A DNA stretch of 64,000 nt from positions 55,862,001-55,926,000 of the forward strand of contig OZ286467.1 of assembly GCA_965644265.1 (NCBI GenBank), written 5' to 3'. A program made the position numbers and the translations under genes. Under the pieces are notes generated by a model that saw only the letters and a list, made by a program, of their open reading frames with translations, ran no database searches and had not been told where the DNA came from. The DNA comes from Glycera tridactyla (lineage: Eukaryota). Positions 13,490 through 63,190 of the stretch are shown piece by piece (positions within the stretch are counted from its first letter, which is position 1; every line of letters begins with the position of its first letter).

Positions 13490-13652
13490 TGAGATGCAAG
13501 GGAAGGTGTGAATTCCATAAATTTCCACCTTCCATTGGGTACCTGGATGGAGGAGTCTCGAACGATCCCATCATTGCCTATTGCATGGGCATCACAATAT
13601 AGCAAAAATAGACCTGATGTGACGTTAAACCAGAACCAACCCACCAACCAAC
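13490..13652 (+). mobile_element. SINE-like family A copy
   Basis: GTGAATT-CATAAATTT-CACC, GGAGGAGTCT, GCATGGGCATCACAATATAGC, GTGACGTTAAACC plus CAAC tail. Confidence 0.8.
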
Positions 13653-19188: not shown

Positions 19189-20103
19189 CAGAAATGACAC
19201 CTCAGGAGTCTGTGAATTTCATAAATTTTCACCTATTGACCCGGGAGGAGGAGTCTTGGATGATCCCTCCCATGCCCATCTTATGGGCGTCACAATATAG
19301 CACAGCTGCAGCTGACGTGACGTTAACCCCCAACCGACCAGTGTTCATAAAAATAGCGATTCTAATAAGGCAATGGATGGACATTCTTTGGCATGTCAGC
19401 CAGCCAAGTGAAGGTTAGTGAATTTCACTGCGTAACAAAGTGGCCAGAAATAGCTGGCCTAGTGGAAGCCATATGAATCAATCACATTTTCACGGGGTGA
19501 CACCGTGGTCAACATTTTTGAAAACAGAAATGGCACCTTGAGTGTCACTGAGTTTCATGAATATTCACCTTCTGTTTGGGATCTAGAGGGAGGAGTCTTG
19601 AATGACACTACCCCTGCCAATTGCGTGCATAACACAATATAGAAGACCAGATGGTGCCCACGAACGTAAGAGTAACGAACTACCAAACAACCAATCAGTC
19701 AAGACTTTGAGACTAAAGATTATATGATCCCAGGAATGACACCTTGAGTGTACCAGGGGAAGAGTTGGCCCCACGTTTCCCTACGTGTTGTAAGAGGCGA
19801 CTAAGTGGGCATCCCAGAAACGACACCTCGGGTGTGTCTGTGAATTTCATAAATTTTCACCTTCCGTTTGGGACCCAGAAGGAGGAGTCTTGGAAGATCC
19901 CACCCACGCTCATTGCATGGACGTCACAATATAGTTCAAATGGTGCTGATGTGACGTTAAATCACAACCAACCAACCACCTTGAGAGTCTGTGTATTTCA
20001 TGAATTCTCTACCCAGAAGGAGTCTTAAGTGATCCCACCCACGCCCATTGTATGGGCGTCACAGTATAGCACATAAATCGCTTACGTGACGTTGAACCAG
20101 AAG
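19189..20103 (+). mobile_element. Head-to-tail cluster of family A copies (about 19189-19340, 19405-19700, 19733-19760, 19816-19980, 19981-20103)
   Basis: Repeated AATGACACC, GTGAATTTCATAAATTTTCACC, GGAGGAGTCTT and GGGCGTCACAATATAG blocks, all on the + strand. Confidence 0.8.
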
Positions 20104-27700: not shown

Positions 27701-30700
27701 CAGCATGGGGAAAAAACACCTGCCAGGTATGTATCAAATAAACCTGCCCCATATAAATTCAGCCTTCCCCATCATACGACCATTGCAATTTTTCCCACCT
27801 GTTCTTAAAACAGATGAATTGATAATCAACCTGTCTAGCTGTCTGTGAGTGGTGCCAGAAGGAAACATTGTCATGAAACCCAATAATCTTGGACCATCCA
27901 GCCATGAAAAGTGAGATGATATGAACATCACAGGCACTTGAAATGTCATTTCAGAAATGAGCAACAGGGAAAGATTGACCTCACCTTCAGGAGGAGAATG
28001 AAGGCAACATTCTCAGCTCGGGTCAATAGCTTCACCAGACCCTCTGCTTTGGCATTGTAATGGGAGGCATCCTGCAGACAATGTACGATAGGCGCAAATG
28101 CACGAATGCACCAATCGATGGCTCGTTTCATGTGCCCCATCCACCTGGTTCCGCCAACTCTGGGGGGCATGAGGGGTGTCTTTCCAAGCATCTCGAATGT
28201 TTTTCGGAGAAGTCTCCTCTGCTTGCTGCTCCTCTTGAAGAAATAATACAAGCCGACTAAGAGGGTCAGCACCTGGTCGTACAGCTTGGGCGCAGCCTTT
28301 TTGATGGCATCCTTGTACCCGAGTTCCAGTCTGTGTGCTAAACAATGAATGACAATCAAAGCTGGGTGGCGCTCTTGCAAGAGTGCTGCAAGTCCTTTCT
28401 TGCGGCCAAGCATGTTGGAGGCACCATCACAGCTGAAGCCAACAAACTTGTCCATGTAACCGTCAAGACCAGCCTGATGTAAAGTGCTGCATACCACTTC
28501 GAAGAGTGCTGCTGATTCAGTTGAGTCTGGCTCAACAATCTTCAGGAACTTTGTTTCAGCCTCCCCCTTTGTGACAAAACGCACAAATAGCGTCTCTTGC
28601 TCTGTGCTACTGATATCCGTTGCTCCATCCATGGTGAGGCTGAAGTAGCTGCAGTGCTGAATACAGTCATTAAGATGCGATGTCTCCACCTCAGCAATCG
28701 AGTCAATGAATAAGCCACCTGAATGGGGATTCCGGTACGTACATCCCACATCCAACCCTTTCGCCTCATCCAGGTCTGCCAGCCATTCCACGTCTTTGAT
28801 CGGCCGATTCTTCTTGGCTATGGCATGGGCATTTCGAAAGAGAATTTGGAGTCGCGACCTCTCATTCTCCTTCAGCTGAATCAAGGCCTTCCCTGCAGCA
28901 GAGGCGGATGCTCCCACATTACTTGAAGACTGCTGTGCCCTTGCGACTGCTGCAATCTTCTGGTGGGCCTTTGACATCTCATGATCAGTGATGGCTGACT
29001 TCTTAAAGTTGTTGGTCCCCTCAATGAAGCTGCCCTCTTTCTGCATAACCTTCAGGCGACTGTCAGTGGCCAGCTCCTTAAGGTCGCAACAGAATTTGCA
29101 GAACATGAGGTTCTTCGCACAATCATGGATCAGCCAATCTCTTCCGACTTGCCAGCTGCTCTGTGAAAAAAAAGGAGAGATGGTCAGCATATGCATCTCA
29201 GAAGCATCTATTCTGGCACATCCAGCCTGGTTCCTGCAATTTCTGAATTTCCATTTTCGCTAAATTTTCAGAAAATTGGCGTCACTGACCCACTCAACAC
29301 CACCCACACGTGGGCTAATGGTTGCCCTACTAGCATCGGGCAGGTAATTTTATCAGTCTGCTATGAATCTTCATGCTGGGTGTGTGTGTAAGGGGGGGGG
29401 GGGTGAATATGATACTTCACCTGAAGACAGCTAAAGAAAAAAGCTAATTTTTAGAGAAATTCATGCTTATTCCAAATGAAAACTAGAACTGTAATCCAGA
29501 GGATGACTAACAGGTGGGGGACTGGCCTGTTATTTCAGTACGTCCTGTGATCAGGGGATGGTGGGTGTACTGTAATCACAGGATGTACTGGGATTCCAGT
29601 ACACTCTGCAGTGCTGAGTGGGTTTTGGGTAAATAACCAAGTGTGTTCATAATTTCTCTTTTATTGTGATTTTCATCATCTGTACAGTACTGACATGACA
29701 ACACTGTATTTTCTGGTTCAGGGAAGTCCAAAATTGTCGCAGTTGTGTCAGGTGGTACAGAATTACATACCATAGTAGCATAGGTACATTTCTCATGATT
29801 TTTCATCACATGTTTGAGATGTTTCTCCATTTACAGCATAATTGTTCCAGAAACCGTAAAATCAAATAGTCTCAATAAAAAGAGGATGATGTCCAAAGGT
29901 AGGTTGTAGCTTGTAGTTTTGAAATAGATCTATTGAGGGATGGGTTAATTCATTTTTTTCACCTTTGTGTCGAATGCGGTCGGTCAAGAACCATCGAATA
30001 CATGATTCATCAAATTGTGTGTGTGTGTGTGGGGGGGGGGGGGAAGGTTGATGGTTCAAATCCAATACAAGCCAAAAAATAATTTGGAACACATTTCATG
30101 GACCTGTTGCCAGTACAAGCTGGGAATATGTCTCTGACATGATTTCTATCACTAAAAAAATGTGTGTGTGTATGTGTGTGTGTGTGTGTGTGTGCGCGCG
30201 CATAATCCTCTATGTTGATACATGCATTTAACATCAACCAATCATCACATGTTTGAGATGTTTCTCCATTTACAGCATAATTGTTCCAGAAACCGTAAAA
30301 TCAAATAGTCTCAATAAAAAGAGGATGATGTCCAAAGGTAGGTCGTAGCTTGTAGTTTTGAAATAGATCTATTGAGGGATGTGGGACTCAACCAGGAAGT
30401 TACTTTTGCGTCCATCAGGGTTTCATTTACCCCTGCGTCCTGCGTCATACACGAATCAAATCACATCCGGGACCCATCATACTGCCAATCCACCTACCTA
30501 CCCACCTACCCACCCACCTATCCACTCACCTGCCCATCCACCATTCTACCCACCCATCCACCCACCACTCTACCCACATACCCATCCACCTACCCACCAC
30601 TCTACCCACCCACCCACATACCCAAGCACCTACCAACCCACCCACACGTGGGTGGGTGGGTAGGTGGATGGTTAGATGAGTGTGTAGGTGGGTGGGTGGG

Positions 30701-33700
30701 TGGTTAGGTGAGTGAGTGGGTGAGGTGAGTGGGTGGGTGGGTGGGGTGGTGAGTGGGTGGGTGGTTGAGTGGGTCATTGAGGTGAGTGGGTGGGGCAGTG
30801 AGTGGGTGAGGTGAGTGGGCAGGTGGGTTGGTGAGTGAGTGGGTGGGTGGGCAGGTGGGTGTGGTGAGTGGGCAGGTGGTTGTGGTGAGTGGGTGGGTCA
30901 GTGAGGTGAGTGGGTGGGGCAGTGAGTGGGTGAGTGGGTGGGTGGGGGGGGGTGAGTGGGCAGGTGGGTGTGGTGAGTGGGCAGGTGGTTGTGGTGAGTG
31001 GGTGGGTCAGTGAGGTGAGTGGGTGGGGCAGTGAGTGGGTGAGGTGAGTGGGGGGGTGGTGAGTGAGTGGGTGGGTGGGGGGGTGAGTGGGTGGGTGAGG
31101 TGAGTGGGTGGGTGGGTCAGTGAGGTGAGTGGGTGGGTGGGCAGGTGAGTGAGTCAGTGAGGTGAGTGGGCTGGTGGGTGAGTGGATGGGTGGTTGAGTG
31201 GGTCATTGAGGTGAGTGGGTGGGGCAGTGAGTGGGTGAGGTGAGTGGGCAGGTGGGTTGGTGAGTGAGTGGGTGGGTGAGGTGGGTTGGTGAGTGAGTGG
31301 GTGGGTGGGCAGGTGGGTGTGGTGAGTGAGTGGGTGGGTGAGTGGGCAGGTGGTTGTGGTGGGTGGGTGGGTCAGTGAGGTGAGTGGGTGGGGCAGTGAG
31401 TGGGCAGGTGGGTTGGTGAGTGAGTGGGTGGGTGAGGTGGGTTGGTGAGTGGGTGGGTCAGTGAGGTGAGTGGGTGGGTGGGCAGGTGAGTGAGTCAGTG
31501 AGGTGAGTGGGCAGGTTGGTGTGGTGGGTGAGTGGATGGGTGGTTGAGTGGGTCATTGAGGTGAGTGGGTGGGGCAGTGAGTGGGTGAGGTGAGTGGGCA
31601 GGTGGGTTGGTGAGTGAGTGGGTGGGTGAGGTGGGTTGGTGAGTGAGTGGGTGGGTGGGCAGGTGGGTGTGGTGAGTGAGTGGGTGGGTGAGTGGGCAGG
31701 TGGTTGTGGTGGGTGGGTGGGTCAGTGAGGTGAGTGGGTGGGGCAGTGAGTGGGCAGGTGGGTTGGTGAGTGAGTGGGTGGGTGAGGTGGGTTGGTGAGT
31801 GGGTGGGTCAGTGAGGTGAGTGGGTGGGTGGGCAGGTGAGTGAGTCAGTGAGGTGAGTGGGCAGGTTGGTGTGGTGGGTGAGTGGATGGGTGGTTGAGTG
31901 GGTCATTGAGGTGAGTGGGTGGGGCAGTGAGTGGGTGAGGTGAGTGGGCAGGTGGGTTGGTGAGTGAGTGGGTGGGTGGGCAGGTGGGTGTGGTGAGTGG
32001 GCAGGTGGTTGTGGTGAGTGGGTGGGTCAGTGAGGTGAGTGGGTGGGGCAGTGAGTGGGTGAGTGGGTGGGTGGGGGGGTGAGTGGGTGGGTGAGGTGAG
32101 TGGGCGGGTGGGTGGGGTGAGTGGGCAGGTGGGTGTGGTGAGTGGGTGGGTCAGTGAGGTGAGTGGGTGGGGCAGTGAGTGGGTGAGGTGAGTGGGGGGG
32201 TGGTGAGTGAGTGGGTGGGTGGGGGGTGAGTGGGTGGGTGAGGTGAGTGGGTGGGTGGGTCAGTGAGGTGAGTGGGTGGGTGGGCAGGTGAGTGAGTCAG
32301 TGAGGTGAGTGGGCTGGTGGGTGAGTGGATGGGTGGTTGAGTGGGTCATTGAGGTGAGTGGGTGGGGCAGTGAGTGGGTGAGGTGAGTGGGCAGGTGGGT
32401 TGGTGAGTGAGTGGGTGGGTGAGGTGGGTTGGTGAGTGAGTGGGTGGGTGGGCAGGTGGGTGTGGTGAGTGAGTGGGTGGGTGAGTGGGCAGGTGGTTGT
32501 GGTGGGTGGGTGGGTCAGTGAGGTGAGTGGGTGGGGCAGTGAGTGGGCAGGTGGGTTGGTGAGTGAGTGGGTGGGTGAGGTGGGTTGGTGAGTGAGTGGG
32601 TGGGTGGGCAGGTGGGTGTGGTGAGTGAGTGGGTGGGTGAGTGGGCAGGTGGTTGTGGTGGGTGGGTGGGTCAGTGAGGTGAGTGGGTGGGTGGGCAGGT
32701 GAGTGAGTCAGTGAGGTGAGTGGGCTGGTGGGTGAGTGGATGGGTGGTTGAGTGGGTCAGTGAGGTGAGTGGGTGGGGCAGTGAGTGGGTGAGGTGAGTG
32801 GGCAGGTGGGTTGGTGAGTGAGTGGGTGGGTGAGGTGGGTTGGTGAGTGAGTGGGTGGGTGGGCAGGTGGGTGTGGTGAGTGAGTGGGTGGGTGAGTGGG
32901 CAGGTGGTTGTGGTGGGTGGGTGGGTCAGTGAGGTGAGTGGGTGGGGCAGTGAGTGGGCAGGTGGGTTGGTGAGTGAGTGGGTGGGTGAGGTGGGTTGGT
33001 GAGTGGGTGGGTCAGTGAGGTGAGTGGGTGGGTGGGCAGGTGAGTGAGTCATTGAGGTGAGTGGGCAGGTGGGTGTGGTGGGTGAGTGGATGGGTGGTTG
33101 AGTGGGTCATTGAGGTGAGTGGGTGGGGCAGTGAGTGGGTGAGGTGAGTGGGCAGGTGGGTTGGTGAGTGAGTGGGTGGGTGAGGTGGGTTGGTGAGTGA
33201 GTGGGTGGGTGGGCAGGTGGTTGTGGTGAGTGGGGCGGTGAGTGGGTGGGTGGGCGAGTGAGTGGGTGGGTGAGGTGGGTGGGGCAGTGAGTTGGTAGGG
33301 TGGGTGGGTGGGTGAGGTGAGCGAGTGGGAGGATGGGTGAGTGGGTGGGCAGGTGAGTGAGTGAGTGATGGTCGGCGTGGTCATGATCTTGGTCACTCAC
33401 GAAACCTGCAGTGATCTTGGTCACTGCAGGTAGATCAGGGCGAGAAGACATCCTGAAAATCCACCTGCCCCCCCTGGAAAATCCACCTGCCCTGCTTATA
33501 TATGTAAGTCATTTATGTTCATTCTCCACCTGCCCACCTGAAAAATCTACCTGCCCCGGGCAGGTGGGCGGCTATCTCTTCTCGCCCTGTAGATGGGTGT
33601 GGATTTGTGGTAGCTGTGGTAGCCAGCTGTTAGCCCCTGTTCCCTTCCCCCCCCCCCCCAATCACCCACCAACCCACCCACCCCCACATGTTAATTTTGA

Positions 33701-33953
33701 TGCACTTGCATTGAAAATCAGCGAATACACAGAATAATAACACAAAAAAAGCTACCTGAAATTTTCTGATTGTTGGCTTCTTTCTCTCCTGGTTGCCCGT
33801 TGATTCATCCAGTCTTCCCTTTTTCATCTCCTGGCTACTTGGTGATGCTTCCAGTTGTCTCTTTGCTTCCCTGCTGGGGCCAGGCACTGGTGATTGTGGC
33901 TCTGAGGCTGGCTTCCCAGGCCTTGGAGTTCTCTTGACAAACTTGTCCATCAT
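24732..33953 (-). CDS. hAT-family transposase (ZNF862/DUF4371-like), 7 exons, 795 aa predicted
   Basis: Exons 33953-33756, 29160-27985, 27617-27499, 27136-26919, 26261-26144, 25858-25585 and 25016-24732; all introns GT-AG with compatible phases (0,0,2,1,2,0); 2388 nt with no internal stop found. Motifs: TTF-like zinc finger (RKFQ|SSW..FCKFC..DHEMSKAH), TMDGATD, SCDGASNM, HCLAHRLEL, and dimerisation domain LPPTSVVNEMAFS. Confidence 0.88.
26478..26603 (+). mobile_element. Internally deleted family A copy in transposase intron 4
   Basis: GACCAGTGAACTGATCCC..CAGTGGCC joined to GCCCATGTCCATTGCATGG..GGAGCTGAC-TGACATTAA. Confidence 0.7.
26604..26783. mobile_element. hAT-type MITE inserted in the family A tail, ~5-bp TSD
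   Basis: CAGGGCTTTA / TAGAGCCCTG; flanks TTAAG / TTAAA; GGCAGGT repeats; related remnant at 29311-29352. Confidence 0.7.
27365..27460 (-). mobile_element. Partial reversed copy of the 17362/33436 MITE in intron 3
   Basis: CAGGTGGGCAGGTAG..AAATGACTTGCATACATAAGCAGG is the reverse complement of the MITE core. Confidence 0.7.
29804..30381. repeat. 139-bp direct duplication (29804-29942 and 30243-30381)
   Basis: Near-identical, with one T/C difference seen; the spacer contains (GT)n and poly-G runs. Confidence 0.9.
30481..33368. repeat. GGGT/GAGT-rich satellite in transposase intron 1, with a short inverted C-rich arm and ~350-bp higher-order period
   Basis: C-rich at 30481-30644, CACGTG at 30645-30650, G-rich thereafter; marker GGATGGGTGGTTGAGTGGGTCA at 31184, 31534, 31884, 32327, 32738 and 33088. 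Confidence 0.95.
33436..33589. mobile_element. hAT-type MITE with 5-bp TSD TAGAT (hAT5-like)
   Basis: Perfect TIR CAGGGCGAGAAG / CTTCTCGCCCTG; TAGAT at 33431-33435 and 33590-33594. Confidence 0.9.
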
Positions 33954-34059
33954 CAAAGTTCTCCCCTCCAAACCGCTGATCAGTGACAATCACTGGCTAT
34001 AATTGAGTCACTGATTCATGGGATCGTTCACTGATGATTAGATGATTTCCTCACTTCTG

Positions 34060-34514: not shown

Positions 34515-34745
34515 CTAGTGGAAGCCATGTTAGTCAATCCCATGTTCACGGGGTAACACTATGGTCAACATTTTTACCAACAGGAATGACACCCGGAGTG
34601 TCTGTGAATTCCATAATATTTCACCTTCTATTGGGACCCAGAAGGATGTGTCTTAGATGATCCCACCCATGGCTCATTGCATGGGCATCACAATATAGCA
34701 CAAATGGAGCTGACGTGACGTTACAACAGGACCAACCAACCAACA
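34515..34745 (+). mobile_element. 3' part of the family A copy split by the hAT transposon
   Basis: CTAGTGGAAGCCATG..AATGACACC..GCATGGGCATCACAATATAGC..GTGACGTTA plus CAAC tail. Confidence 0.85.
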
Positions 34746-34799
34746 GTCATCACCAAAACCGCCACCAAGTGCTGCGCTTTGCAAAAAAAAACATTGCTA

Positions 34800-35745: not shown

Positions 35746-36284
35746 ATCAAATTGTCGATTGGTGGCCCAGGTGGGAATTTCACTCTCACGATGTGTGGTT
35801 GGATTCCATTTAATAGAATAATAGGTTAAGGTTACAACGTCTCCATAGTTCGGCGGGGAGTTGCCCTCGCATTTCACGGAGAAATACACAGCAGGTCAAA
35901 ATCGGAGTCACGTGGATTAAGCGTATAAAGAAGCAAGATGCAGTGGAAGTTCAAGAGTGTCTCCATGGTTAAATTCCGCCCCACTGAACAAGATGATCAT
36001 GCAATGGCAGGTGGGCGACCCCGGCCCTAGTATTGGTTGCGATAACGTGATATGTTGTGGTTCAACGTCTGATATCCACAGCAAGTTCATTCAGCTTCAC
36101 AATGACATTCCTTCGCAGGCCTGTTCCAGCTAGAGCATTTCTCCCAACCACAGGCAAAGAGTTGACTGCATGGGCTAAGCACTCTACAATTACCATCACT
36201 GCCTAGTCAAATACCCATCTACACCTGGGTGATTTCTACTCAATGAGAAGCACAATTCATATAGATAGATCTGCCTAATGGTGT

Positions 36285-36496
36285 AACCCAGTGCATGCCG
36301 ACTGGGATATCAAAGGCCGGCCGTGTAAATAGGAGTCTTTTCCTGTGCGGACGTAAAAGAACCACTGCTGTCTTTTGCAAAGAGTAGGGACGGCCCCCGG
36401 CATGCGGTGACTCTTTTCTTCAGCATTTTTAGGGATTTCTGAGTCCGATATAACCCAAGTGGGTTTAAGCGACGTTATCTCAAACAAACAAACAAA
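36285..36496 (+). mobile_element. Free-standing ~210-bp retroposed element B (LINE 3' UTR / Deu-Nin-like core)
   Basis: Starts AACCCAGTGCATGCCGACTGGG, ends (CAAA)n; TSD CTGCCTAAT(G/A)GTG at 36271-36283 and 36497-36509. Confidence 0.85.
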
Positions 36497-37403
36497 CTGC
36501 CTAATAGTGCCGGTCCAGTATGGAATGGTGAACATTGCTCATCTGGGACATGCATCTGAGGAGGAGCCCTGGACAATATTGTGAACAATGTTACTCAGTT
36601 GAGACCCCCCCCCCCCCAGGTTTGTCTAATGGGCGTTAACACCTACCTTTCAATGTCTTCAGTGGGATTGAAGTCAACGTAATGTGACAATGCTCAAATA
36701 CCAATGCCAATTCTATTCTAGTATGCTTATATTAGTTGTAAAATTCTCGCTTCTCTGCCTAACAATTCAAGTATGTGTTTGTTTTGCAAGAATCTGTAAA
36801 TCAGATGCTTATAGTATGTCTCACTATAAGTGAGGTGCTTCATGTTTGTATAATGTCATGACTGGAGGAGGAGGGATGATACACTCTCCTAATAAAAGTT
36901 CTGATGAATGAGGCCTCAGAAGCAATTTAAAGCATTCGTTGTGGCCTTTGACACCTTTGGAAGCCTTCGATAATCAAAGATGTCGCCGAAGATAGCCTTG
37001 CGTTGATCGTTGAAGCAACTCAACATGAATAATGCTGTTTTGCAGTGGTTCGGTGCCCGGTGGAATGTAACAAAGACATGGGTCGAGAAGCACATAATGT
37101 GCCTTTCTACGCACTAGTCTTCATAATAACGACATCATTAGTACACACAGTCGATCTTAGAAAAGGCGCCCGAGGTACATCGGGAAGCAGGCAAAAGTCT
37201 CTTCAATGATAGGATTCACAAAGCTTTAACAAAACTTTTTTATATGGTGTCCAGATCCAAATGCATGTTTATGTTTGAGATGTGCTTGAGATAGTGTCAA
37301 TACTGATGTATGACATTTTCAATAAAAGCGATTGGAAATTATGATTGATAATTGATTGATATAGAGAGTAATGTTTTCAAGTGTAATTCATTTGTGGTGA
37401 GAA

Positions 37404-43958: not shown

Positions 43959-45134
43959 CAAGAAAATCCCGATGTCATTGCTCCTCTCGGAATAAGATTC
44001 GGAATCATATACATCTGGCCCAGTCAACAAAGGAGACCACCAACCCATCACTATACAAAAGTAGATACCTAGAGATTAGGTCACATTATAGTGATCATGA
44101 GGCCATCTTCACCGATGGATCCAAATGTGAGAGCAAAGCATCAGCAGCTGCTTATACAGAATCACAAACCTATTACTGCAGGCTACCTGATTGGTCAACA
44201 GTGTTTTCAGCTGAAGTGAGTGCTTTACTTATGGCTTTCAAATACATATCAAGATCGGAAAAACAAAAGTTCATAATTTTCACAGACTCCCTGTCTTCTC
44301 TGCAGGCCTTTCAGGAAAATCTCAGGAACTGTATACTCTTGCAAATCTTAGAAGAGTATCAAATAATCAAAGATCATCAAAAGACTCTCAGACTTTGCTG
44401 GATTCCAAGACATATTGGAAATCCTGAAAATGAGGCAGCTGATAAAGCGGCCAAAAGAGCTCTAGGTTTACCAGTCACTGAGATGGAAATCCACTATTCC
44501 GACTTCAAGCCAAGAATAAAGCTCTATATTGACCAACTCTGGCAGAATGAATGGGGAACCAAAAAGCAAAATAGATTATATTGCATCAGTCCAAAACTGG
44601 AGGACAGATTTCCTGTGAGAACTATGAATAGAAGAGAGGAGATAGTACTTTCCCATCTGAGGATAGGACATACATATCTCACACATTCACACCTCCTGAA
44701 AAAAAACGAGGCAATCCTAATTGCTTTGCATGCGGATGCCATCTCACAGTCGAACATTTATTGCTCAACTGTAGAAAACTATTGCAAACTAGAGTAAAGT
44801 ATTACAGTGTTGAAAATATCGCACAACTTTTCATGAAAGTCGATCCAACGGACATACATGTATTCGATTATTTGCATGAATTGTGAGTATTTAGACAAAT
44901 ATGAATCGTATGCATGCTAACCCAGTGCATGCCGACTGGGATATCAAAGGCCGGCCATGTATATACGAACCTTTTCCTGTACCCATGTTAAAGATCCACT
45001 GCTGTCTTTCGCAAAGAGTAGGGATAGCCCCCGGCAGGCAGTGACTCTTTTCTTCAGCATTTTCAGTTTTTTTTTCAGTCCAATATAACCCAAGCGGGTT
45101 TAAGTGATGTTAAACTCAAACAAACAAACAAACA
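43959..45134 (+). mobile_element. 5'-truncated copy of the Nimb/I-group LINE (RNase H, CCHC remnant, 3' UTR element B)
   Basis: Colinear with about 51489-52742 with a small internal deletion; ORF 44201-44797 contains FTDSLSSLQA and WIPRHIGNPENEAAD. Confidence 0.9.
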
Positions 45135-46034: not shown

Positions 46035-46530
46035 AACTCTATGCAGATGATACGCAGCTATATCTTACATATGATAGACACTCTCAAACGCTGAATTGCT
46101 GAAATAAGGATGCTCACAAATAAGCTCAAACTCAATGACTCCCAGACCGAGTTTCTTCTTTTCTCCAACTACAACCTTGATTCCCCATCTCTGTGAATTT
46201 CATAAATTTTCACCTTTCGTTTGGAACCCAGAAGGAGGAGTCTTGGAAGATCCTACCATGCCCATTGCATGGGCGTCACAATATAGCCCATATGGTGCTG
46301 ACGTGACGTTAAACCACAACCAACCAACCCCATCCACCCAAAAGATTAACATTTGGGAGGATGTCATCAGCTCTGGCAGGTCGATCTGCCGAAAAGCTGG
46401 GTGTCATCTTTAATGGTCGCCAACCCTTCACCATACATGTCACTGCTATTTGTAAGTCTGCATTCTTTCAGCTATACAAAATCAGCCGCATCCACAAATA
46501 TCTGACAGCAGATGCAACACAAATCCTCAT
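46035..46530 (+). pseudogene. L2/CR1-group LINE reverse transcriptase fragment
   Basis: LYADDTQLYL, NKLKLNDSQTEFLLF and LGVIF..HVTAICKSAFFQLYKISRIHKYL motifs in broken frames; interrupted by family A at 46190. Confidence 0.8.
46190..46327 (+). mobile_element. Family A copy with 7-bp TSD
   Basis: TSD CCCCATC at 46183-46189 and 46328-46334, consistent with target-primed retroposition. Confidence 0.9.
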
Positions 46531-48254: not shown

Positions 48255-48915
48255 AGGTCCAGTGAACTAACTCGATGTTCACTGCACAGTGGAAGCCAAT
48301 TGAATCAATCCTATGGAAATAGGGTGATATTATGAAATACATTTTAATAACAGGAATGACACACTGACTGTCTGTGAATTTCATGGATTTTCATCCTCCG
48401 TTGGCGGTGGAGTCTTAAATTATCCCATCCATACCTATGCCCATTGCATTGGCGTCACAATATATCATATATGGCGCTGACATGATGTTGAACCACAACC
48501 CAGCAATCAACCTATTATATATGACGCTCACCTGATGTTGAACCACAACCAACCAATCAACCTATTATATATCACGCTCACCTGATGTTGAACCACAACC
48601 AAACAATCAACTTATTATCAACCTATTATGTTGTTGAACCACAACCAACCAATCAACCTATTATATATGGCGCTCACCTGACGTTGAACCACAACCAACC
48701 AACCAACCAACCTATTATATATGGCGCTCACCTGACGTTGAACCACAACCAACCAACCAACCAACCTATTATATATGGCGCTCACTTGACGTTGAACCCC
48801 AACCAACCAATCAACCTATTACATATGGCGCTTACCTGACGTTGAACCACAACCAACCAATCAACCTATTATATATGGCACTCACCTGTCGCTGAACCAC
48901 AACCAACTAACTAAT
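48255..48915 (+). repeat. Family A copy whose 3' end is amplified into a ~45-52-bp minisatellite (about 9 units)
   Basis: Unit TGACGTTGAACCACAACCAACCAATCAACCTATTATATATGGCGCTCACC repeated from ~48470. Confidence 0.85.
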
Positions 48916-49566
48916 CGACCGTATCATCAACAGTTGTTGCCTTAAGCTGTAACTTACGGAAGTTTGTCAGGGATCTGAATTCAAAAGCGGGTATTTGCTC
49001 ACTGCAGACGAGATGACGCCGGCGCCGTAATAATCAAATTTAACAAAATCCGAAGTATCGCCTCAGCAAATCGAATAGAAGTCCTCAACTTTTTATGCAA
49101 TTCATTAGAGCGGTGCCCATTCCAAGCAGCAGCAGCCAATTGAGAATTAAAATCCCTCGTACTAAAGTTCTTCATTTGGGCTGGCATGTATTGCAACGGA
49201 TCCCCGCCCAGGCTGAGAATGATAATGAGTCTCGAAAGTTTCATGAGGGTAATGAGGGATGATTTCAAAATGCCGGATGCAGACCAAGCAGCAGTATGAT
49301 GCCACTCTACGTCTAGCTATGTGGACCACCAGAATCTCTTTAACAACTATTTCGGTTTGAAAATGCTACTTCATACACCGGTCGGCAAAACAGATACTCT
49401 TTCCCTTCAAATATATCTGCCTGAGTTCTTTTGTGTATCAGGTCCCTTTCTCATCTCATCAATTCTGTTTTGTATACTGATTATATTTGTGTATTACTTA
49501 TACTTGCTTGTAAATATGTCTGTTTTCCCAAATAGGAAACTATAGTCCGTAGATACCTCCACAAAA

Positions 49567-52500
49567 GAAAAATTATCCAGTGTGGACATTTTGAGTGCAG
49601 ATGATCCCATTCAAAACTTCACAGAGATAATGCATGGTGTAGCGTTACAAACCATCCCCAAGACCTCTCCTTATCAAGGACAGGCTTCCAAACCATGGTT
49701 CAACGATGATTGCAGAGAAGCTATTGATGAAAGGAAACAAGCACAGAAAGACTTCTCCAGAAGACCTGCTGCGGACTTATTGACTGAGTACAAAGTACTG
49801 AAGGCGAGGTCTCGTAGGACATGTCGCAGCAGTAAGTGTCACTGTTGGAGGGAGTTTGTATCAGGACTTAATTCAAACACACCCATCAATAAGGCTTGGA
49901 ACATGATTCAACGAATCCGTGGAAAGGGTAGAGGCCCACGAATCCACCATCTAAAAAAAGATGATCATCTGATCACGCAACCTCAGGATATTTCGGAATC
50001 ACTAGCATCACAATTTGCACAAAATTCATCTTCTGAAAATCACTCAGAGGAATTTCAAAATTATAAAGAAAAGGCTGAAAGAAAACAACTTGATTTAACA
50101 TCTGATAATACAGAAGAATATAATCAGCTCTTTTCGATGACTGAACTAGAAACTGCATTGAATGCATCCCATGATACCTCCCCAGGGCAAGATGACGTCC
50201 ATTATCAAATGCTGAGACATCTGCCAGCCTGCTCTTTGCAACAGATGCTTGATATCTTTAACCAAATTTGAGAGACTGGATGCTTTCCCACTTCATGGGC
50301 AGAAGCCATAGTCATCCCCATAGCAAAGCCAGGTAAGGATCCATTTGATCCTGTAAATTACAGACCAATAGCACTCACAAGCTGTGTCTGTAAGACCATG
50401 GAAAGAATGATAAATAAGAGGTTGGTTTGGTACTTGGAGTCGAATGAATTGCTAACACCATATCAGAGTGGTTTCCGGAAGGGCAGAAATACACTGGACA
50501 ACCTGATAAGGTTCGAGACATTTATTCGTGAGGCCTTTGTTCAGAAGCAGCACTTAGTTGCAGTTTTCTTTGACATGGAGAAGGCTTATGACACCACCTG
50601 GAAATATGGAATTATGAAAGATCTACTCAAAATGAACCTTAGAGGCAGGATGCCCATTTCCATAGAAATTTTTTTGCGGGATCGGTCTTTCCGTGTCCGA
50701 GTTGGATCTACTTTCTCAGATGATTTCGACCAGGAAATGGGGGTCCCACAAGGAAGCATTCTATCAGTTACCCTTTTCAGCATTAAAATGAATAGTATCA
50801 TTGAATGCCTCTCCCAGGACACCAATTGCTCCTTATATGTAGATGACTTTCTTATTTGCTATGGAGCTAGACAAGTTCGGGTAGTGGAGAGGAAACTACA
50901 GCAAACCCTATACAAACTTCAAGACTGGGCGGACAAGAATGGCTTTAAATTTTCTAAACCAGAACAGTTTGCATGCATTTCTGTAGATCAACAAGGCATC
51001 ATGATGAACCTGAGCTCTTTCTAGGTGGATCAGCAATACCAGTAGTGGAACAAACAAAGTTCCTAGGCCTGGTCTTTGACCGACGATTGGCTTTCAAACC
51101 CCATATTCAGCAACTCAAAGTCAAATGCCTCCAGTCACTTGACATGCTGAAGGTGTTATCCCACCTGGACTGGGGGGTTGATCGGGAAACACTGCTCATG
51201 GTTTACAGATCTCTTATTCGATCTAAATTAGATTATGGGTGCATGATTTAGGGATCGGCATGCCCAACCAACCTCAAAATGCTTGATACAGTCCATAACC
51301 AAGCCTTACGCATATGCCTCCGAGCTTTTCGGACATCACCTACTGAAAGCCTACATGTGGAAGCCAATGAACCTTCACTTCATCTACGAAGGATAAAGTT
51401 AGGTCTCCAGTACTGTCTGAAATTGAAAGCAAACCCATCGAATCCAACACATGAAAGTGTCTTCAGGCCTAAATATAAACAGGAATTTCAAGAAAATCTC
51501 CATGTCATTGCTCCTCTTGGAATAAGATTCGAAAATCGCTTTGGAAGTTGTGACTTTGACACACTCCCAGTATCACAGATGGATCCTGCTCAGATTGCGG
51601 ACTGGGACTGTGACATTCCACAAACACATCTGGACTTGACTCAGTCCACAAAGGAGAACACCAACCCATCGCTATACAAAAGTAGATACCTAGAGATCAG
51701 GTCACGTTATAGTGATCATGAGGCCATCTTCACAGATGGATCCAAATGTGACAGCAAAGCATCTGCAGCTGTTTATACAGAATCACAAACCTATTATTGC
51801 AGGCTACCTGATTGGTCAACAGTGTTTTCAGCTAAACTAAGGGCCTTACTAATGGCTTTCAAATACTTATCAAGGTCGGAAAAACAAAAGTTCATAATTT
51901 CCACAGACTCCCTGTCATCTCTGCAGGCCTTGCAGGGAAATCTCAGGAACTGTATCCTCTTGCAAATCTTGCAAGAGTATCAAATAATCAAAGATCATCA
52001 AAAGACTGTTAGACTTTGCTGGATTCCGAGCCATATCGGAATTCCTGGAAATGAGGCAGCGGATAAAGCGGCCAAAAGGGCTTTAGGTCTGCCAGTCACT
52101 GAGATGGAAATCCATTATTCTGACTTCAAACCAAGAATAAAGCTCTATATTGACCAACTCTGGCAGAATGAATGGGCAACCAAAAAGCGAAATAAATTAT
52201 ATCGCATCAGACCAAAACTTAAGAACGGATTCCCTGTGAGAACTATGAATAGAAGAGAGGAGATAGTACTTTCCTGTCTGAGGATAGGACATACATATCT
52301 CACACATTCTCACCTTCTGAAACAACAAGGCAATCCTAATTGCTTTGCATGCGGATGCCATCTCACTGTCAAACATTTATTGCTCGACTGTAGAAAACTA
52401 TCGCAATCTAGAGTAAAGTATTACACTGTAGAAAATATGACACAACTTTTCATGAAAGTTGATCCAACAGACATATTCGGTTATTTGCATGAATTGGGAA

Positions 52501-52742
52501 TATTTAGACAAATATGAATCGTGTGCATGCTAACCCAGTGCATGCTGACTGGGATATCAAAGGCCGGCCGTGTATTTAGGAGCCTTTTCCTTTACGCACG
52601 TTAAAGATCCACTGCTGTCTTTTGCAAAGAGTAGGGACGGCCCCCGGCATGCAGTGACTCTTTTTCTTCAGCATTTTCAGTTTTTCAGTCCGATATAACC
52701 CAAGCAGGTTTAAGTGACGTTAAACTAAAGCAATCAAACAAA
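49567..52742 (+). mobile_element. 5'-truncated I-group (Nimb-like) LINE with TSD
   Basis: TSD CCTCCACAAAA at 49556-49566 and 52743-52753; ends GTGACGTTAAAC plus CAAA-like tail; encodes RT, RNase H and CCHC. Confidence 0.92.
49582..52517 (+). pseudogene. LINE ORF2 (RT, RNase H, zinc knuckle), disabled
   Basis: YRPIALTSC upstream, QSGFR, FFDMEKAYD, GVPQGSILS, LYVDD; FTDGSK, DSLSSLQAL, WIPSHIGIPGNEAAD; CFACGCHLTVKHLLLDC. Lesions: TGA at 50269, frameshift near 50970, TAG at 51249. Confidence 0.92.
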
Positions 52743-53104
52743 CCTCCACAAAAAAGTTCAAATCTAAATTGCCAGAATGAGGAGTGTGGAATAATCACAC
52801 CCATACTAATGGCATAGTCCTCTCAATATAACCCAGATGGTGCATGTGAGACATCAACCGATCAGTCAAATGAAGAATAAGCCTTGTTCTTCATCATCAT
52901 AAAGTAAGGGATTATTAGCCAAACCACGCAACCAAAGTAAAAATGATGTAAGTGTAAACGAGGTAGTAGTGAGAGTGGGAATCCCTCCCACGAAGATATT
53001 TCTCCCACAGATAGTGAATCAGTTGCTGTAGCTGTGCGGTGGACATTCATGTGATTCATGGAATGTGATCCTGACCTCCATGCCCGCCAAACACACCCAT
53101 GCAT

Positions 53105-53184: not shown

Positions 53185-53625
53185 AAGCACACACATACCC
53201 ACGCCCATACCCACGCACACACCCACGTATACACACACGAACGCACACAAACTCACCCACACTCACACACGCGTGATTCAGAGGGACTGCATGCCACTAC
53301 TCAGATAGCATTTATTCGGTTTGAAATCTTAACCATACAGAAGAAATGGGTCTAACTGAAATTCCACCGTTTGTTTCTGATCTGTCGAATCCAAATATGA
53401 CTGATGCGTTTCCCATTCTCCTCCCGGCAATCCAGGCTCGATTGAAGTGAAACTCACTGACAGGCTTTGTTGACATGTCTGGCGAAAAGAAATCTGATCA
53501 AGATGATACAAAAATATGTTGATTTCACGCAGTCCCCATAGTGACAGCGTTGAATGACCTCCATGATTGTACTGAACTATTTTCCGGGGAATTTCAAGCA
53601 TTTTCACCTTCCGTTTTATACCCAG

Positions 53626-54327
53626 TTTGTTTGTTTGTTTGACCTAACGTCACTTAAAGCCGCTTGGGTGTAATCGGACTGGAAAAACTGAAAATGCTGA
53701 AGAAAAGAGTCACTGCCTTTTGGGGGCCGTCCCTACTCTTTGTGAAAGACAGCAGTGGATCTTTGATGTGCGTAAAGGAAATAGCTCCTGAATACACAGC
53801 CGGCATTTGATATCCCAGTTGGCATGCACTGAGTTAGCATGCACACAATTCATATTTGTCTAAATATTCCCAATTCATGCAAATAATCAAATACGTCTGT
53901 TGGATTGACTCATGGAAAGTTGGGTCATATTTTCAACAGTGTAATACTTCACTCTAGTCTGTGATAGTTTTCTACAGTCGAGCAATAAATGTTTGACTGT
54001 GAGATGGCATCCGCATGCAAAGCAGTTAGGATGGCCTTGTTTTTTCAGAAGGTGTGAATGTGTGAGATATGTATGTCCTATCCTCAGACGGGAAAGTACT
54101 ATCTCCTCTCTTCTATTCATAGTTCTCACAGGGAATCCGTTCTCAAGTTTTGGTCTGATGCGATGTAATTTTTTTTGCTTTTTGGTTCCCCATTCATTCT
54201 GCCGGAATTGGTCAATATAGAGCTTTATTCTTGATTTGAAGTCTGAATAATGGATTTCCATCTCAGTGACTGGCAAACCTAGAGCCCTTTTGGCCGCTTT
54301 ATCCGCTGCCTCATTTCCAGGAATTCA
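53626..54327 (-). mobile_element. Inverted 5'-truncated copy of the same LINE (3' 700 bp)
   Basis: Reverse complement of ~52040-52742; ORF 53887-54276 with CFACGCHLTVKHLLLDC; element B at the 3' end. Confidence 0.9.
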
Positions 54328-54822
54328 ATAGGAAGAGTCGTAAAACGACAAACGAATCCACTTCTCTAGCAAGCAAAAGGTATCCGAACCATAAAATAGT
54401 AATGGTTTGGTACACATTTAAAATGAAGAATAAAAACGTTGATCAGAGTATTCTGGAGTGATTGGCTCTTTGGATCAGGGATTGGCCATTTTCCAACAAT
54501 CTGATCTTATCCCGACGATAAGACATGAGTAGGTGCGAAGGAGATTTTTCTCCTTGACATTTGAGAATGAATGTATGCCTACTTAACACATTTTATTTCC
54601 TCGAAGCAGTGAAGCACTTCCGTCTGATGATCCTGTCAGTGACATCTGGCTGGTAAACACATTTCTCTTGAGTCTATCGATTCTCAACATGTAACTGCGT
54701 CTGGCTATTTTGATGATGAGGATATTTGAGGACTGTGAACAAATCGACAACAGAAATCACCCCATAAATCTGGGAACTCTGATTATTTCACGATATGTTG
54801 ATTTGATTCATTGCTGCCACTG

Positions 54823-55033
54823 AACCCCCAGTGCATGCTGACTGGGATATTAAAGGCCGGCCATGTATTTGGGAGCCTTTCTTTACGCACGTTAAAGATC
54901 CACTGCTGTCTTTCGCAAAGAGTAGGGATGGCCCCCGGCAGGCAGTGACTCTTTTCTTCAGAGTTTTCAGTTTTTTTCAGTCCGATATAACCCAAGCGGG
55001 TTTAAGTGACGTTAAACTCAAACAAACAAACAA
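54823..55033 (+). mobile_element. Free-standing element B
   Basis: Starts AACCCCCAGTGCATGCTGACTGGG; TSD CTGCCACTG at 54814-54822 and 55034-55042. Confidence 0.88.
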
Positions 55034-55109
55034 CTGCCACTGGATGTTAATGGCTGGCCGCGGGTTTGGGAGTCTACTCCAATATGCATGGGCTTTGGCT
55101 TTGGTCAGG

Positions 55110-55400
55110 TAGAAATTAGTTAACTGATCCCATGTTCACTGCGTAACACAGTGGCAAAAATGAACTGACCCAGTGGAAGCCATGTGGATCAATCCCATGT
55201 TCACAGGGTAACACTGTGGTCAACAGTTTTGATAAGAGGAGTGACACCTTGAGCCTCTGTGAATCTCATAAATGTTCGCCTTCTGTTGGGGGGCCCAGAA
55301 GGAGGAGTCTTGAATGATCCCACTTGTAGCCATTGCATGGGCGTCACAACATAGCACAAATGGAGCTGACGCGACTTTAAAACAGAATCAACTAACCAAC
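55110..55400 (+). mobile_element. Family A copy (long form)
   Basis: AACTGATCCCATGTTCACTGCGTAACACAGTGG through GCATGGGCGTCACAAC-TAGC and CAAC tail. Confidence 0.85.
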
Positions 55401-55694
55401 CGTATGCATGTTGAAGAACCACCGTTATCCTGGCAAGGAGTAGGGTATTTCCCCCGATAGTCGTGCCTCATTTCCTCAGACTTTCCAGTTTTTCTGATAT
55501 AACCCATGGTTGAAAGGACGTTAAGACCAAACAAACAAGCATACAAACAAGCAAACGGAAAAGAAGCCAGTATATAGATAATCTGCCCATCTCTACTACC
55601 AAATTGTCTTGAATGACACCCATAGCAATTCATCATATTAAGGCTCAGAGACTGAAATAGTGTGGGTTCATGCAATAATTCTGCCTGTCCACAA

Positions 55695-57807: not shown

Positions 57808-58030
57808 GTCAAGTCAGCTGATCCCTTGTTCTCAGGGTAACAATGTGGCCAACATCTCTGGTACCAGGAATGAAACATTGAGTGTCAGTGAATTTTCTGA
57901 AAATTCACCTTCCGTTGGGGCCCTGAAGGGTGAGTCATGAATGGTCCCACCCCTGCCCATTGCATGGGTGTCACAATATAGCATGTATGACGCTGACGTG
58001 ATGTTAAATCAAAAACAACCAACCAACCTG
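57808..58030 (+). mobile_element. Family A copy
   Basis: CTGATCCCTTGTTC..GCCCATTGCATGGGTGTCACAATATAGC..GTGATGTTAAA plus tail. Confidence 0.8.
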
Positions 58031-59832: not shown

Positions 59833-60709
59833 CTCATCTCAGGTGTCTATGGATATATGAAAGACATCTTCCAGAAAGGACACAACAGATCGATTCTGTG
59901 ACTGATTTGTAGCTAACGAGTTGCGTGCTATTACTCCCCATTTGCACACCCATTTAAAAGGTTCATTGGCATTCACAATGTCGTGTGCACAGAAAAAGCC
60001 TACATCTTTGATCGTGAGTTATGAAGGTGGAGCCATGCTAGCTTTGATCTTGTAAGGCTATCTAATGAAAATATGTGCGCTGAAAAAAGTGCCACAAGAG
60101 TATAGACATTGTTCAACTCCGATGAAATCGGAACAACCATGATTTGTTCTAGATTATTAAAGGAATTTTCCCCATGTCCACATCATAATATTGAGTCCCC
60201 ATTCATTCATTTGAATTATTCAACAGCAACTGACATGTCAATTGAGGAGAATAACAATCGTGAAATGGATGTATCGTGATCTCAAACGAGAAAGAACAGT
60301 CCATTCAAACCATCTCAGGTATGTCATTGGATTGAATGCCATGAAATACAATTTATCATTCATAATGACTTACCATCTAACTGACTATAGACGGCCAAAA
60401 CACATTTAGATACTTGATTTGAAGAGGAGCTGATGGATGATTAGATTTGCTTCAGGATAATTTAGGGCAACCTTTCGAGCTCTTTTAGCTGATGCCTGAT
60501 TGTAATGCACACACCACTTGAAATCCAATACGGTGGGAAGTTCTTGTTGCTGTGCCAAAGCAAAATCCCTCTACTTGTCAATCAGTTGCATGAGAGAAGA
60601 AATACATTTGACACCTTCGAGGGTCTGTGAATTTCATAACTTTCCACCTTTTTGCTGAGAGCTCAGATGTCTTGATGCCATCCATTTCTTCGGCGTCTCA
60701 ATGTAGTCC

Positions 60710-60927
60710 AACCCAGTGCATGCCGACCGGGATATCAAAGGCTGGCCGTGTACGTAGAAGTCTGTTCCTGTATGCACGTGAAAGAAACATATGCACTGCC
60801 GTCTCTCGCATAGAGTAGGGACGGCCCCCGCCAGCGGTGCCGCTTTTCTTCAGCATTTTCAGTTTTTCAGTCCCATATAACCCGAGGTGATTAAAAGGAC
60901 CTTAAACCCAAGCAAACAATCAACACA
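60710..60927 (+). mobile_element. Free-standing element B inserted into a decayed family A copy
   Basis: Starts (AA)CCCAGTGCATGCCGACCGGG; TSD CTCAATG(T/C)AGTCCAA at 60697-60711 and 60928-60942. Confidence 0.82.
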
Positions 60928-62194
60928 CTCAATGCAGTCCAAATAACGTACGAGAGACGTAAAACAAGCGACCAACCAAGTGCTCCAAATAAACATGTGA
61001 TTATTTCTATTGGCTGTAGGAGCCATCCGTGATTGGTGGATAGACGTCTGAGCATTCATGGGGGACACTGCATTCAACGAGACAGATGGAGATGTAAGTA
61101 GCTGGACACTGAGGTTGGGAGTGAGTTATGGAGCCTACATTCAAATTAAGACAGATATGGCGGTAGTCAGACCAACATTGAAAGATTGATGCATAAGTAG
61201 GCCCACTGGTGCTACTTTGAACACACAAATCACAATGTAGAGAATAAATGGTACACGAAGCCTGAAATGAATTAAATTGTCGTTTACTAATTAAATAAAG
61301 GGCAGATATCTGTGGATCGGAAGTGCTTTCTCTAATCCTATGACTCAGATCTCTTTCAACGGCTATGCAATATAGCCGAGGTGGTGTTGACGAGAGGGAA
61401 ATCGCCAAGCAACTCACGACCCGACCATCCCAATCACATGGCTAATATATAACCCCAAACATCCATTCCACTTTCACCTGCAGCATCTTTCACACCATTT
61501 ACAGACACAGACACAGTTGGACACAAGAACAATGAGAAAAACAAATGTGAGGAAATTTTCATTGTGGTGTCAAATGGCTCATTTCATAGATTATATTGAT
61601 TCTTGTCCCAAATCAGAGATGACACCTCGAGTATTTCATGATTACTCTCTATTCTATTTTCATCCATGTATTATTGCAATGGTTACTTCCACTTGTAATT
61701 GGGTCGGAAAGTACTATTGTAGTCCATTGCCTGAGATGGATTTCATATGCAGGCGACTCTTGTCCGGACCTGGACTTTTGACCAGGGATGAACACATTCT
61801 TCTCGGCGCATTGCTCAATGGCATTTATTCAAAATTCGCTATTTCGTGGAGAAATGTTGAATGATCCCCTCACTTGCCCATTACATTTCTGTCTCAATAT
61901 AAAAGCTCAGCCGGTGCTCATGAGATCGTAAACAGTCAACCAGCTAATCAACAAGCCAATGATACCTGTCTCATTGGCCAGTATACCGAAAGATTGGACT
62001 GCCGTGGAAAGAATTATGCCGTGTTCCTGACATTTGGGAGCTGGATTCTTTGTCCCATGCAGGCACCACTCTCACACACTCTAAACTTTAGATGATGGGA
62101 ACCATTGAGGTTGTCAAATGGAAGTAGCTGCTGTCAAGTGGAAGTAGCTGCTGTTCGCACAAATAATGGTATTTCTGAATATGTGTCAGCTCAC

Positions 62195-62435
62195 AAATTG
62201 CTCCGCATTGGGTGCCATCTCACAGGTTGGGATGTATTGCTTGATTGTAGAAAACTATCACCCATTATAGAAAAGTATCACAGTGGAAGTTGATTCAATA
62301 TACATTTTGATCATTTGCATGAATAATGGGCATTTAAGCAAATATGAATTGTATGCATGCTCACCCAGTGCACAGCGACTGGGAGATCAAACGTCGGCCA
62401 TGTGAATGGGGGTCTATTACTGTATGCATGCCCCC
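62195..62435 (+). mobile_element. Old fragment of the same LINE 3' end, including the ORF-to-element-B junction
   Basis: GCHLT..LLDCRKLS; AAATATGAATTGTATGCATGCTCACCCAGTGCACAGCGACTGGG. Confidence 0.75.
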
Positions 62436-62459
62436 CACGGCTTCCACCTTTATGCGGTG

Positions 62460-63190
62460 GTGGGGATTGTGTGCTTCAATGATCTCAAGAGCCATGCCAG
62501 ACAGGTTCAACCATACTGGACAGGTCTTGAGTGAGGGGCCAGACAAAGTGAAGCTACACTCCTCCATGGGAGAGCCTTGCCTTCGACATGGTGGAGGGGC
62601 TTGAGTGTCATGAGGACCCTGAGAGCTATACCAGATAGGTTCAACCATACTGGGCAGGTCTCAGGCAAGTGGCCAGGAGAAGTCTCCCTGGGGCAGGGGG
62701 GATTGCGTGCTTCAGTGATTTCAAGGGCTATGCCGGACAGGTCCAACCATACTGGACAGGTCTTGAGTGAGGGCCAGACAAAGTGAAGCCCCCCGTAGGT
62801 GCCCGGGACTTTTGGCAAACCAGTAGAGAATAGGTTCCATGTGTATCCCTATGTGATATAAGTGGGACCCCTTTCTTTACATGCATGCTCCAATGATCTC
62901 GAAGAGCTATGCCAGACAGGTACAACCATACTGGACAGGTTTTCAGTGAGGGCTCATTGGAAGTGAAGCTACCCGATGGATGCCCAGGATGTTTGGAACA
63001 CCGAAAGAGTAAAATAGGCCCCACGTGAATCCTTATGTGTCCTAAGTGGGAATCCACTTCTCCTCCATGGGAATACTATGCCTTTGGCATGGTAGAGGGG
63101 CTTTTGTGGCATGAGAACCCTCTGAGCTAAACCAGATAGGTTCAACCATACTGGGCAGGTCTCAGGTGAGTGGCGATTTGCATGTTCCCT
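62460..63190. repeat. Irregular array with five copies of a 28-bp core
   Basis: CCAGA(C/T)AGGT(T/C/A)CAACCATACTGG(A/G)CAGG at 62497, 62631, 62733, 62912 and 63132. Confidence 0.85.

Follow-up and report, generated by a model that had tools for sequence, protein, structure and literature searches.

To understand the organization of the 3′ ends of a family of LINE elements, a 64-kb stretch of DNA (the window; contig OZ286467.1 of Glycera tridactyla assembly GCA_965644265.1, positions 55,862,001 to 55,926,000) was analyzed. The features described below are collected in Table 1, with positions given in the coordinates of the window.

Table 1. Positions of the LINE copies, solo copies and their sequence elements in the 64-kb window
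Position	Strand	Feature	Remarks
49555-49566	.	Left copy of the 12-bp target-site duplication (TSD) of LINE copy B	ACCTCCACAAAA; exact repeat at 52742-52753
49567-52517	+	5′-truncated, frameshifted ORF2 remnant of LINE copy B	RT at 50398-51024; RNase H plus C-terminal region at 51279-52517; stop at 52515-52517
52518-52531	+	14-nt linker between the stop codon and the mobile unit	ATCGTGTGCATGCT; conserved in LINE copies A, C and D and in the LINEs L032, L004 and L005 from other assemblies; absent from solo copies
52532-52741	+	The ~210-nt unit that is both the LINE 3′ UTR and the free-moving headless element
52534-52553	+	5′ hairpin	CCCAGT / 8-nt loop / ACTGGG
52551-52633	+	Stretch matched by the profile of published Deu-type SINE bodies	Profile positions 13-97
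52596-52660	+	Core	GCACGTTAAAGATCC, then a predicted stem (52610-52615 with 52651-52656) that encloses AAAGAGTAGGG (52626-52636) and a small G/C hairpin
52690-52741	+	Clade-typical LINE tail	AACCC..GGTT stem, GACGTTAAAC (52716-52725) and a degenerate (CAAA)n
52742-52753	.	Right copy of the TSD of LINE copy B
43959-45133	+	LINE copy A, fragment with the ORF2 end plus the block	Block 44905-45133; RNase_H on 44201-44797
53625-54326	-	LINE copy C, inverted, ORF2 end plus the block	Block 53625-53849
62196-62430	+	LINE copy D, older copy (~78% identity)	Block from 62348; ORF2 end, linker, hairpin and first ~85 nt of the block, then interrupted
36284-36496	+	Solo copy E	13-bp TSD (36271-36283 and 36497-36509, 1 mismatch)
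54823-55033	+	Solo copy F	9-bp TSD (54814-54822 and 55034-55042)
60712-60927	+	Solo copy G, a divergent subfamily (81%)	15-bp TSD (60697-60711 and 60928-60942, 1 mismatch)
55403-55544	+	Copy H, old (~71%) 5′-truncated copy	Starts at the core (block position ~76)

The block follows the end of ORF2 in four LINE copies

The search of the window with the sequence 52518-52760 using BLAST showed that the block, which begins directly after the ORF2 stop codon of LINE copy B, is present in eight copies. A 49-nt sequence from its central part (52599-52647), which was quoted in the preliminary description, recurs with two mismatches at positions 36352 and 54890, while no matches are expected by chance. 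In four copies, A, B, C and D, the block follows the end of a LINE ORF2 with the same junction, which consists of TGA, a linker of ~14 nt, and then (A)ACCCAGTGC. The downstream flanks of copies A, B and C are unrelated, which shows that they are not local duplicates. Copy B is enclosed by a perfect TSD, while no TSD was found for copies A or C, and copy D is interrupted by unrelated repeat sequence, a G-rich repeat at 62430-62800 with units of about 180-250 bp (…GGGGATTGTGTGCTTCAATGATCTCAAGAGCCATGCCAGACAGGTTCAACCATACTGGACAGG…). The junction between the ORF and the block was also bridged by contigs from public sequencing runs of three organism labels. The Pfam search detected RVT_1 (6.9e-25) and RNase_H (1.1e-11) domains in the ORF fragments, and homologues carry RT, RNase H and APE, although the APE domain (Exo_endo_phos) was seen only in one relative (L003), because the window copy is 5′-truncated. 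These data suggest that the element is an I/Nimb-like LINE. The preliminary description had called this LINE autonomous, but the copies in the window are truncated or frameshifted, with no full-length LINE among them, and hence autonomy is a property of the family at best.

The unit also moves alone

Besides the LINE copies, the unit starting at the position corresponding to 52532 occurs without an ORF in three solo copies, E, F and G, which are 81-92% identical to the LINE UTR over about 210 nt. Each of them has its own TSD, and all start within 2-3 nt of the same position, with the hairpin directly after the TSD. To estimate the abundance of this form, contigs of four public runs from the three organism labels were compared with the region 51279-53000. 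The data showed that the depth rises sharply at 52532, about 5-fold in two runs (X5 and X9) and 15- to 70-fold in the other two (X1 and X2), and that the sequences upstream of this position have low agreement, which means many different flanks. Hence, the headless unit of ~210 nt is by far the commonest form. Some contigs share only parts of the block, as they join ~52564-52573 to ~52661 and skip the core, match only from 52662 on, or diverge after 52649 or 52704, and thus related mosaic families that exchange modules seem to exist in this genome.

To find out whether the solo unit has the head of a canonical SINE, the window was searched for small RNA sequences. ARAGORN found 0 tRNAs in the window, while Rfam gave nothing at the gathering score in the window and nothing relevant at E≤5 in the region 54700-55650 around solo copy F, so that no tRNA, 5S or ribozyme was found in or before the unit. 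The unit also contains T4-T7 runs, which would be expected to terminate transcription by Pol III. It is not a canonical SINE. The fixed 5′ end of the solo copies fits an RNA end (a start or a cleavage) better than RT pausing, because the complete hairpin is included in the copies.

The window also contains repeats that are distinct from the block. A second abundant short retroposon family of about 230-290 bp, which ends in an (AACC)n-like tail and is unrelated to the block, has more than 20 hits, including 55171-55401, 34517-34747, 57821-58028, 19424-19605, 13507-13649, 42353-42234 (-), 46189-46329 and 48287-48512. One of its copies abuts the truncated copy H, but the region 55171-55544 is not a composite SINE, because the upstream repeat family ends at 55401 in all its copies. 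A copy of this family is followed by a tandem array at 48463-48920 of about 9 units of 50-54 bp (…GACGTTGAACCACAACCAACCAA…), which resemble the 3′ tail of the LINE/SINE elements, and which may be a satellite grown from a retroposon tail. The region 30001-34000 is strongly G-rich (GC 0.58-0.60, GC skew +0.6) and stands out from the background of ~0.41 GC.

Similarity of the block to Deu-type SINE bodies

To test whether the block resembles the Deu-type core of SINEs, as proposed in the preliminary description, it was compared with stretches of 62-89 nt from five curated bivalve SINE consensuses (PMC10294476, supplement 14), a library which includes tRNA-Deu-L2, tRNA-Deu-CR1 and MD-type families. 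Pairwise local alignments were judged against dinucleotide shuffles. The highest scores were obtained for M. coruscus cons_4 (Mc4), with z values of 8.4-10.9, 0 of 2000 shuffles and about 80 nt aligned, followed by A. marissinica cons_4 (Am4, tRNA-Deu-L2), with z values of 5.8-7.1 against copy E and the UTR of L032, a LINE from a marine-metagenome contig filed under project PRJEB4352. The z values were 4-5 for S. broughtonii cons_45 (Sb45, tRNA-Deu-L2), while S. glomerata cons_11 (Sg11) and M. coruscus cons_1 (Mc1) were weak (1.5-4). These references are labeled Deu automatically by RepeatClassifier in a mollusc library, and Mc4 is in fact labeled tRNA-Core. The single Sb45 consensus was not significant against the whole window (E 2.9), and a three-sequence profile was marginal (E 0.1-0.4). 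However, a profile made of all five sequences, searched against both strands of the window (128 kb), hit only copies of the block, which were copies F (E=1e-4), E (0.0024), B (0.0033) and G (0.044), while the next hit had an E value of about 5. In the reciprocal test, a profile of the LINE and solo blocks ranked Mc4 (13.0 bits) and Am4 (11.2 bits) above 5000 shuffled decoys, the best of which scored 4.6 bits, while the other three references did not beat the decoys. The V and Meta domain stretches from the same library, which served as controls, scored at chance (z about 0). Pattern scans for the core in IMG/VR and JGI metagenomes gave none or only chance matches, as checked by BLAST, and a text search of papers for the core motifs gave only chance hits.

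The elements shared between the block and the SINE bodies occur in the same order. They include a small hairpin, AAAggCCgGcCGTGT in the block against AAAccGAGGTCCCGTGT in the SINEs, GCACGTTAAAGAtCC, and a stem with different letters in each family, which encloses (A)AAAGAGTAGG and a small G/C hairpin. The shared motifs can be summarized as GCACGxTAAAGAxCC and AAAGAGTAGG, with GGxCxCGTGT upstream. On the other hand, the CCCCGG motif, which the preliminary description had included in the conserved pattern, is not shared with the reference Deu SINEs. Structure prediction using RNAfold gave the same stem-plus-two-hairpins layout after GCACGxxAAAGA for LINE copy B, solo copy E and the published SINE cores Sb45 and Mc4, with different stem letters. 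The predicted fold of the whole block was no better than that of shuffled sequences (z -0.9), and the fold of the alignment had few informative pairs, so that the structure cannot be considered as proven. The 3′ part of an MD-type SINE shared only the GGACGTTAAAC end with the block, and the region between the core and the tail is not shared with Nimb-tailed MD SINEs. Overall, the similarity to the bivalve references is moderate, about 65% over about 80 nt, but the data support the preliminary description in that the block is similar to Deu-type SINE bodies and its junction with the ORF is not confined to local duplicates. As judged with these bivalve stretches, and without vertebrate Deu or cnidarian Nin-DC sequences, the module in the UTR is probably truly homologous to Deu-type SINE bodies.

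Conservation of the 3′ UTR among related LINEs

To see whether the block is a property of a single family, proteins related to the last 412 residues of ORF2 were used to find LINEs in other assemblies. In L032 and in a second contig, L004, whose ORF2 is 65-66% identical to that of the window LINE, the UTR has the complete architecture, with the linker, the same hairpin, the core, an insert of ~50 nt, the tail and (CAAA)n. In L005 (58%) the linker, a hairpin at the same place, the central Deu stretch and the tail are present. The five-sequence profile hit the UTRs of L032 (5.6e-6), L005 (1.2e-4) and L004 (1.5e-4), which represent two LINE families, but not L001, L002, L003 or L006, and a later run against whole loci gave no hit in L034-L039. 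The more distant L001 and L006 (53-55%), as well as L034 and the L002/L035 type (40-44%), have only the tail, while L003, L036, L037, L038 and L039 (31-43%) lack the Deu module, and the shared tail was not seen in their UTRs. Two other relatives, L007 and L033, gave no usable UTR.

The hairpin of L005 (L005:1785-1810) keeps its position but has different letters (CTTCAGTG / CACTGAAG), such that CC..GG becomes TT..AA and the change is compensated, although L005 was misaligned here by MAFFT and the hairpin was read by eye. The Deu SINE consensuses, also read by eye, begin with a small hairpin whose stem letters differ between families (GGTC..GACC, AGTC..GACT, GTTC..GAAC). Between copy B and L032 the UTR is 78-82% identical, while the last 690 nt of ORF2 are 70% identical, which argues for selection on the UTR RNA. 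In an ORF2 tree, which contained only unnamed relatives, all LINEs with a Deu-type UTR fell in one 100/100 clade together with the tail-only L001 group, so that one origin is not excluded.

Possible origin of the Deu-type module

The data are best explained, although only with even confidence, by the block being the native, functionally constrained 3′ UTR of a lineage of I/Nimb-like LINEs, which consists of two parts. The terminal tail, with a small stem, GACGTTAAAC and the (CAAA)n microsatellite, is similar to that of the bivalve SINE tails attributed to Nimb partners (PMC11481361), and by analogy with stringent LINEs it is probably where the reverse transcriptase starts target-primed reverse transcription. 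The upstream structured module of ~130 nt, with the 5′ hairpin, GGCCGGCCGTGT, GCACGTTAAAGA and the stem enclosing AAAGAGTAGGG, would be the part homologous to the Deu/Nin-type body of tRNA-derived SINEs. The solo element, which in this explanation uses the proteins of the LINE in trans, carries all of this module and not just the tail, which suggests that the module adds to mobilization, through RNP assembly, stability or protein binding.

The direction of transfer is not resolved by these data, but we lean towards the transfer from LINE to SINE, which we consider about as likely as not. In this view a headless UTR-only RNA, or an internally deleted LINE, acquired a tRNA head by template switching, and later the extreme tail was exchanged for L2- or CR1-type tails, which left the Deu part stranded as a body of unknown origin. 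This is consistent with the facts that SINE 3′ parts generally come from LINE UTRs, that the module is constrained in the LINE, that Deu and a Nimb-type tail are adjacent in MD-type SINEs as they are in the LINE, and that the 5′ border of the domain coincides with the 5′ end of a free RNA unit. Additionally, oyster LP-SINEs join a Nimb 5′ UTR head to a partial Nin-DC body and tail, which they share with tRNA SINEs, and are mobilized by an "as yet unidentified" LINE (PMC4758252), which is exactly what an internally deleted LINE of the present kind would look like under the model of Kojima (PMC5786205). The LINE described here may also identify this partner of the mollusc Nin-DC SINEs and LP-SINEs. 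More tentatively, the Deu/Nin domain itself, the origin of which has been open for about 20 years, could have begun as the structured upstream part of the 3′ UTR of an ancient I/Nimb-like LINE, with headless retroposons like the solo copies or internally deleted LINEs such as the oyster LP-SINEs as intermediates, which gained tRNA or 5S heads and later swapped tails. The extreme conservation of the domain would then reflect its original role as a LINE RNA element that binds the retrotransposition machinery.

Alternatively, an ancestor of this LINE clade could have replaced a short tail-only 3′ UTR with the body and tail of a Deu-type non-autonomous element, either a DeuSINE with a Nimb tail or the headless solo element, by RT template switching from the short RNA onto LINE RNA near the end of ORF2. 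The Deu core would then be older than the LINE and foreign to it. We consider this less likely, but among the sampled LINEs the Deu-type UTR is confined to one well-supported clade, and it is absent from the P0001 group inside that clade, from the sister clade (L034, with a UTR of ~70 nt) and from all more distant relatives. Parsimony therefore favors a gain within the LINE tree, which fits capture from a SINE at least as well as an ancient LINE origin. The greater abundance of the solo element than of the LINE makes it a plausible donor, and the homology starts within about 14 nt of the stop codon, at the 5′ end of the solo unit. Moreover, Deu/Nin SINEs have been reported from cnidarians to vertebrates with L2 and CR1 tails, so they spread independently of Nimb LINEs (PMC4824008; PMC11481361). 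On the other hand, no trace of a tRNA head or Meta domain lies between the stop codon and the block. The linker and block are conserved across LINE families 58-65% identical in ORF2, with the UTR more conserved than the ORF, and any capture would therefore be old and followed by selection in the LINE. Additionally, L006, which belongs to the tail-only group inside the clade, keeps a hairpin (GTTGAA..TTCAAC; L006:1381-1450) followed by CCGTGT, which then goes straight into the tail, and which, as read by eye, looks like a deleted remnant rather than an ancestral short UTR.

It is unlikely, although not excluded, that the resemblance to Deu-type SINE bodies is not homology, and that the short motifs and stem-loop layout of a lineage-specific UTR are convergent, for example because of similar constraints for binding a related RT, or arose by chance. 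The limited identity, the lack of significance of a single Deu query, the failure of three references in the reciprocal test and the small number of sequences in the profile are consistent with this possibility. However, the profile hits fell only on block copies in the window and only on the LINE UTRs among the retrieved loci, several motifs occur in the same order, the shuffle tests reached z values of up to 10.9, and the V and Meta controls were at chance. The possibility that the repeated junction is an artifact of local segmental duplication or assembly, which could be suggested by the location of copies B, C and F within 3 kb of each other, is refuted by the differing flanks, the TSD of copy B, and the presence of the junction in contigs from three organism labels and in the unrelated assemblies L004 and L032.

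Comparison with known elements

Conserved SINE cores (Deu, Nin, V, CORE, Meta) persist across phyla for hundreds of millions of years, and in vertebrates they have repeatedly been exapted as enhancers, while their origin is still called unknown in the open literature that could be searched (PMC5786205; PMC11481361), in which no report of a LINE carrying the Deu domain was found from 2016 on. Like I-superfamily/Nimb-clade LINEs, the element described here has RT followed by RNase H, with APE in relatives, and it has a GACGTTAAAC-type tail like that of the bivalve SINE tails attributed to Nimb partners, while most of its sampled relatives have short UTRs of 70-170 nt without the Deu module. The sharing of a 3′ end by a LINE and a short element is classical, and as in stringent LINE/SINE pairs, for example UnaL2/UnaSINE1 and the CR1-, L2- and Nimb-tailed bivalve SINEs, the two elements share the 3′ end and a microsatellite tail, and the TSDs are variable (9-15 bp). 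Here the shared stretch is the whole UTR of ~210 nt, and not the 35-61 bp reported for bivalve SINE-LINE pairs (PMC11481361), and what is new is that it includes a conserved SINE body domain.

With the DeuSINE/Nin-DC SINE superfamily (AmnSINE1, LF-SINE, SINE3, BivaDeu-SINE1, BivaMD-SINE1, Lgi-Nin-DC-SINE) the block shares the collinear motifs and the predicted stem-loop layout of bivalve Deu-type bodies, but it has no tRNA or 5S head, and the domain is located 14 nt after a LINE ORF2 stop, or at the very 5′ end of a headless element. The idea that the bodies of SINEs are pieces of LINEs left behind after tail exchange is the same as that proposed for LINE-derived SINE bodies and bipartite non-autonomous LINEs (Kojima 2018, PMC5786205), and the oyster Sgl_LP SINE combines a Nimb 5′ UTR head with a partial Nin-DC body and a tail (Matetovici 2016, PMC4758252). 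However, Kojima traced bodies only to the 5′ regions of RTE and Vingi LINEs, and stated that no LINE similar to the widely conserved bodies had been found, while here the candidate source is a 3′ UTR of an I/Nimb-like LINE, and the domain is one of the widely conserved ones.
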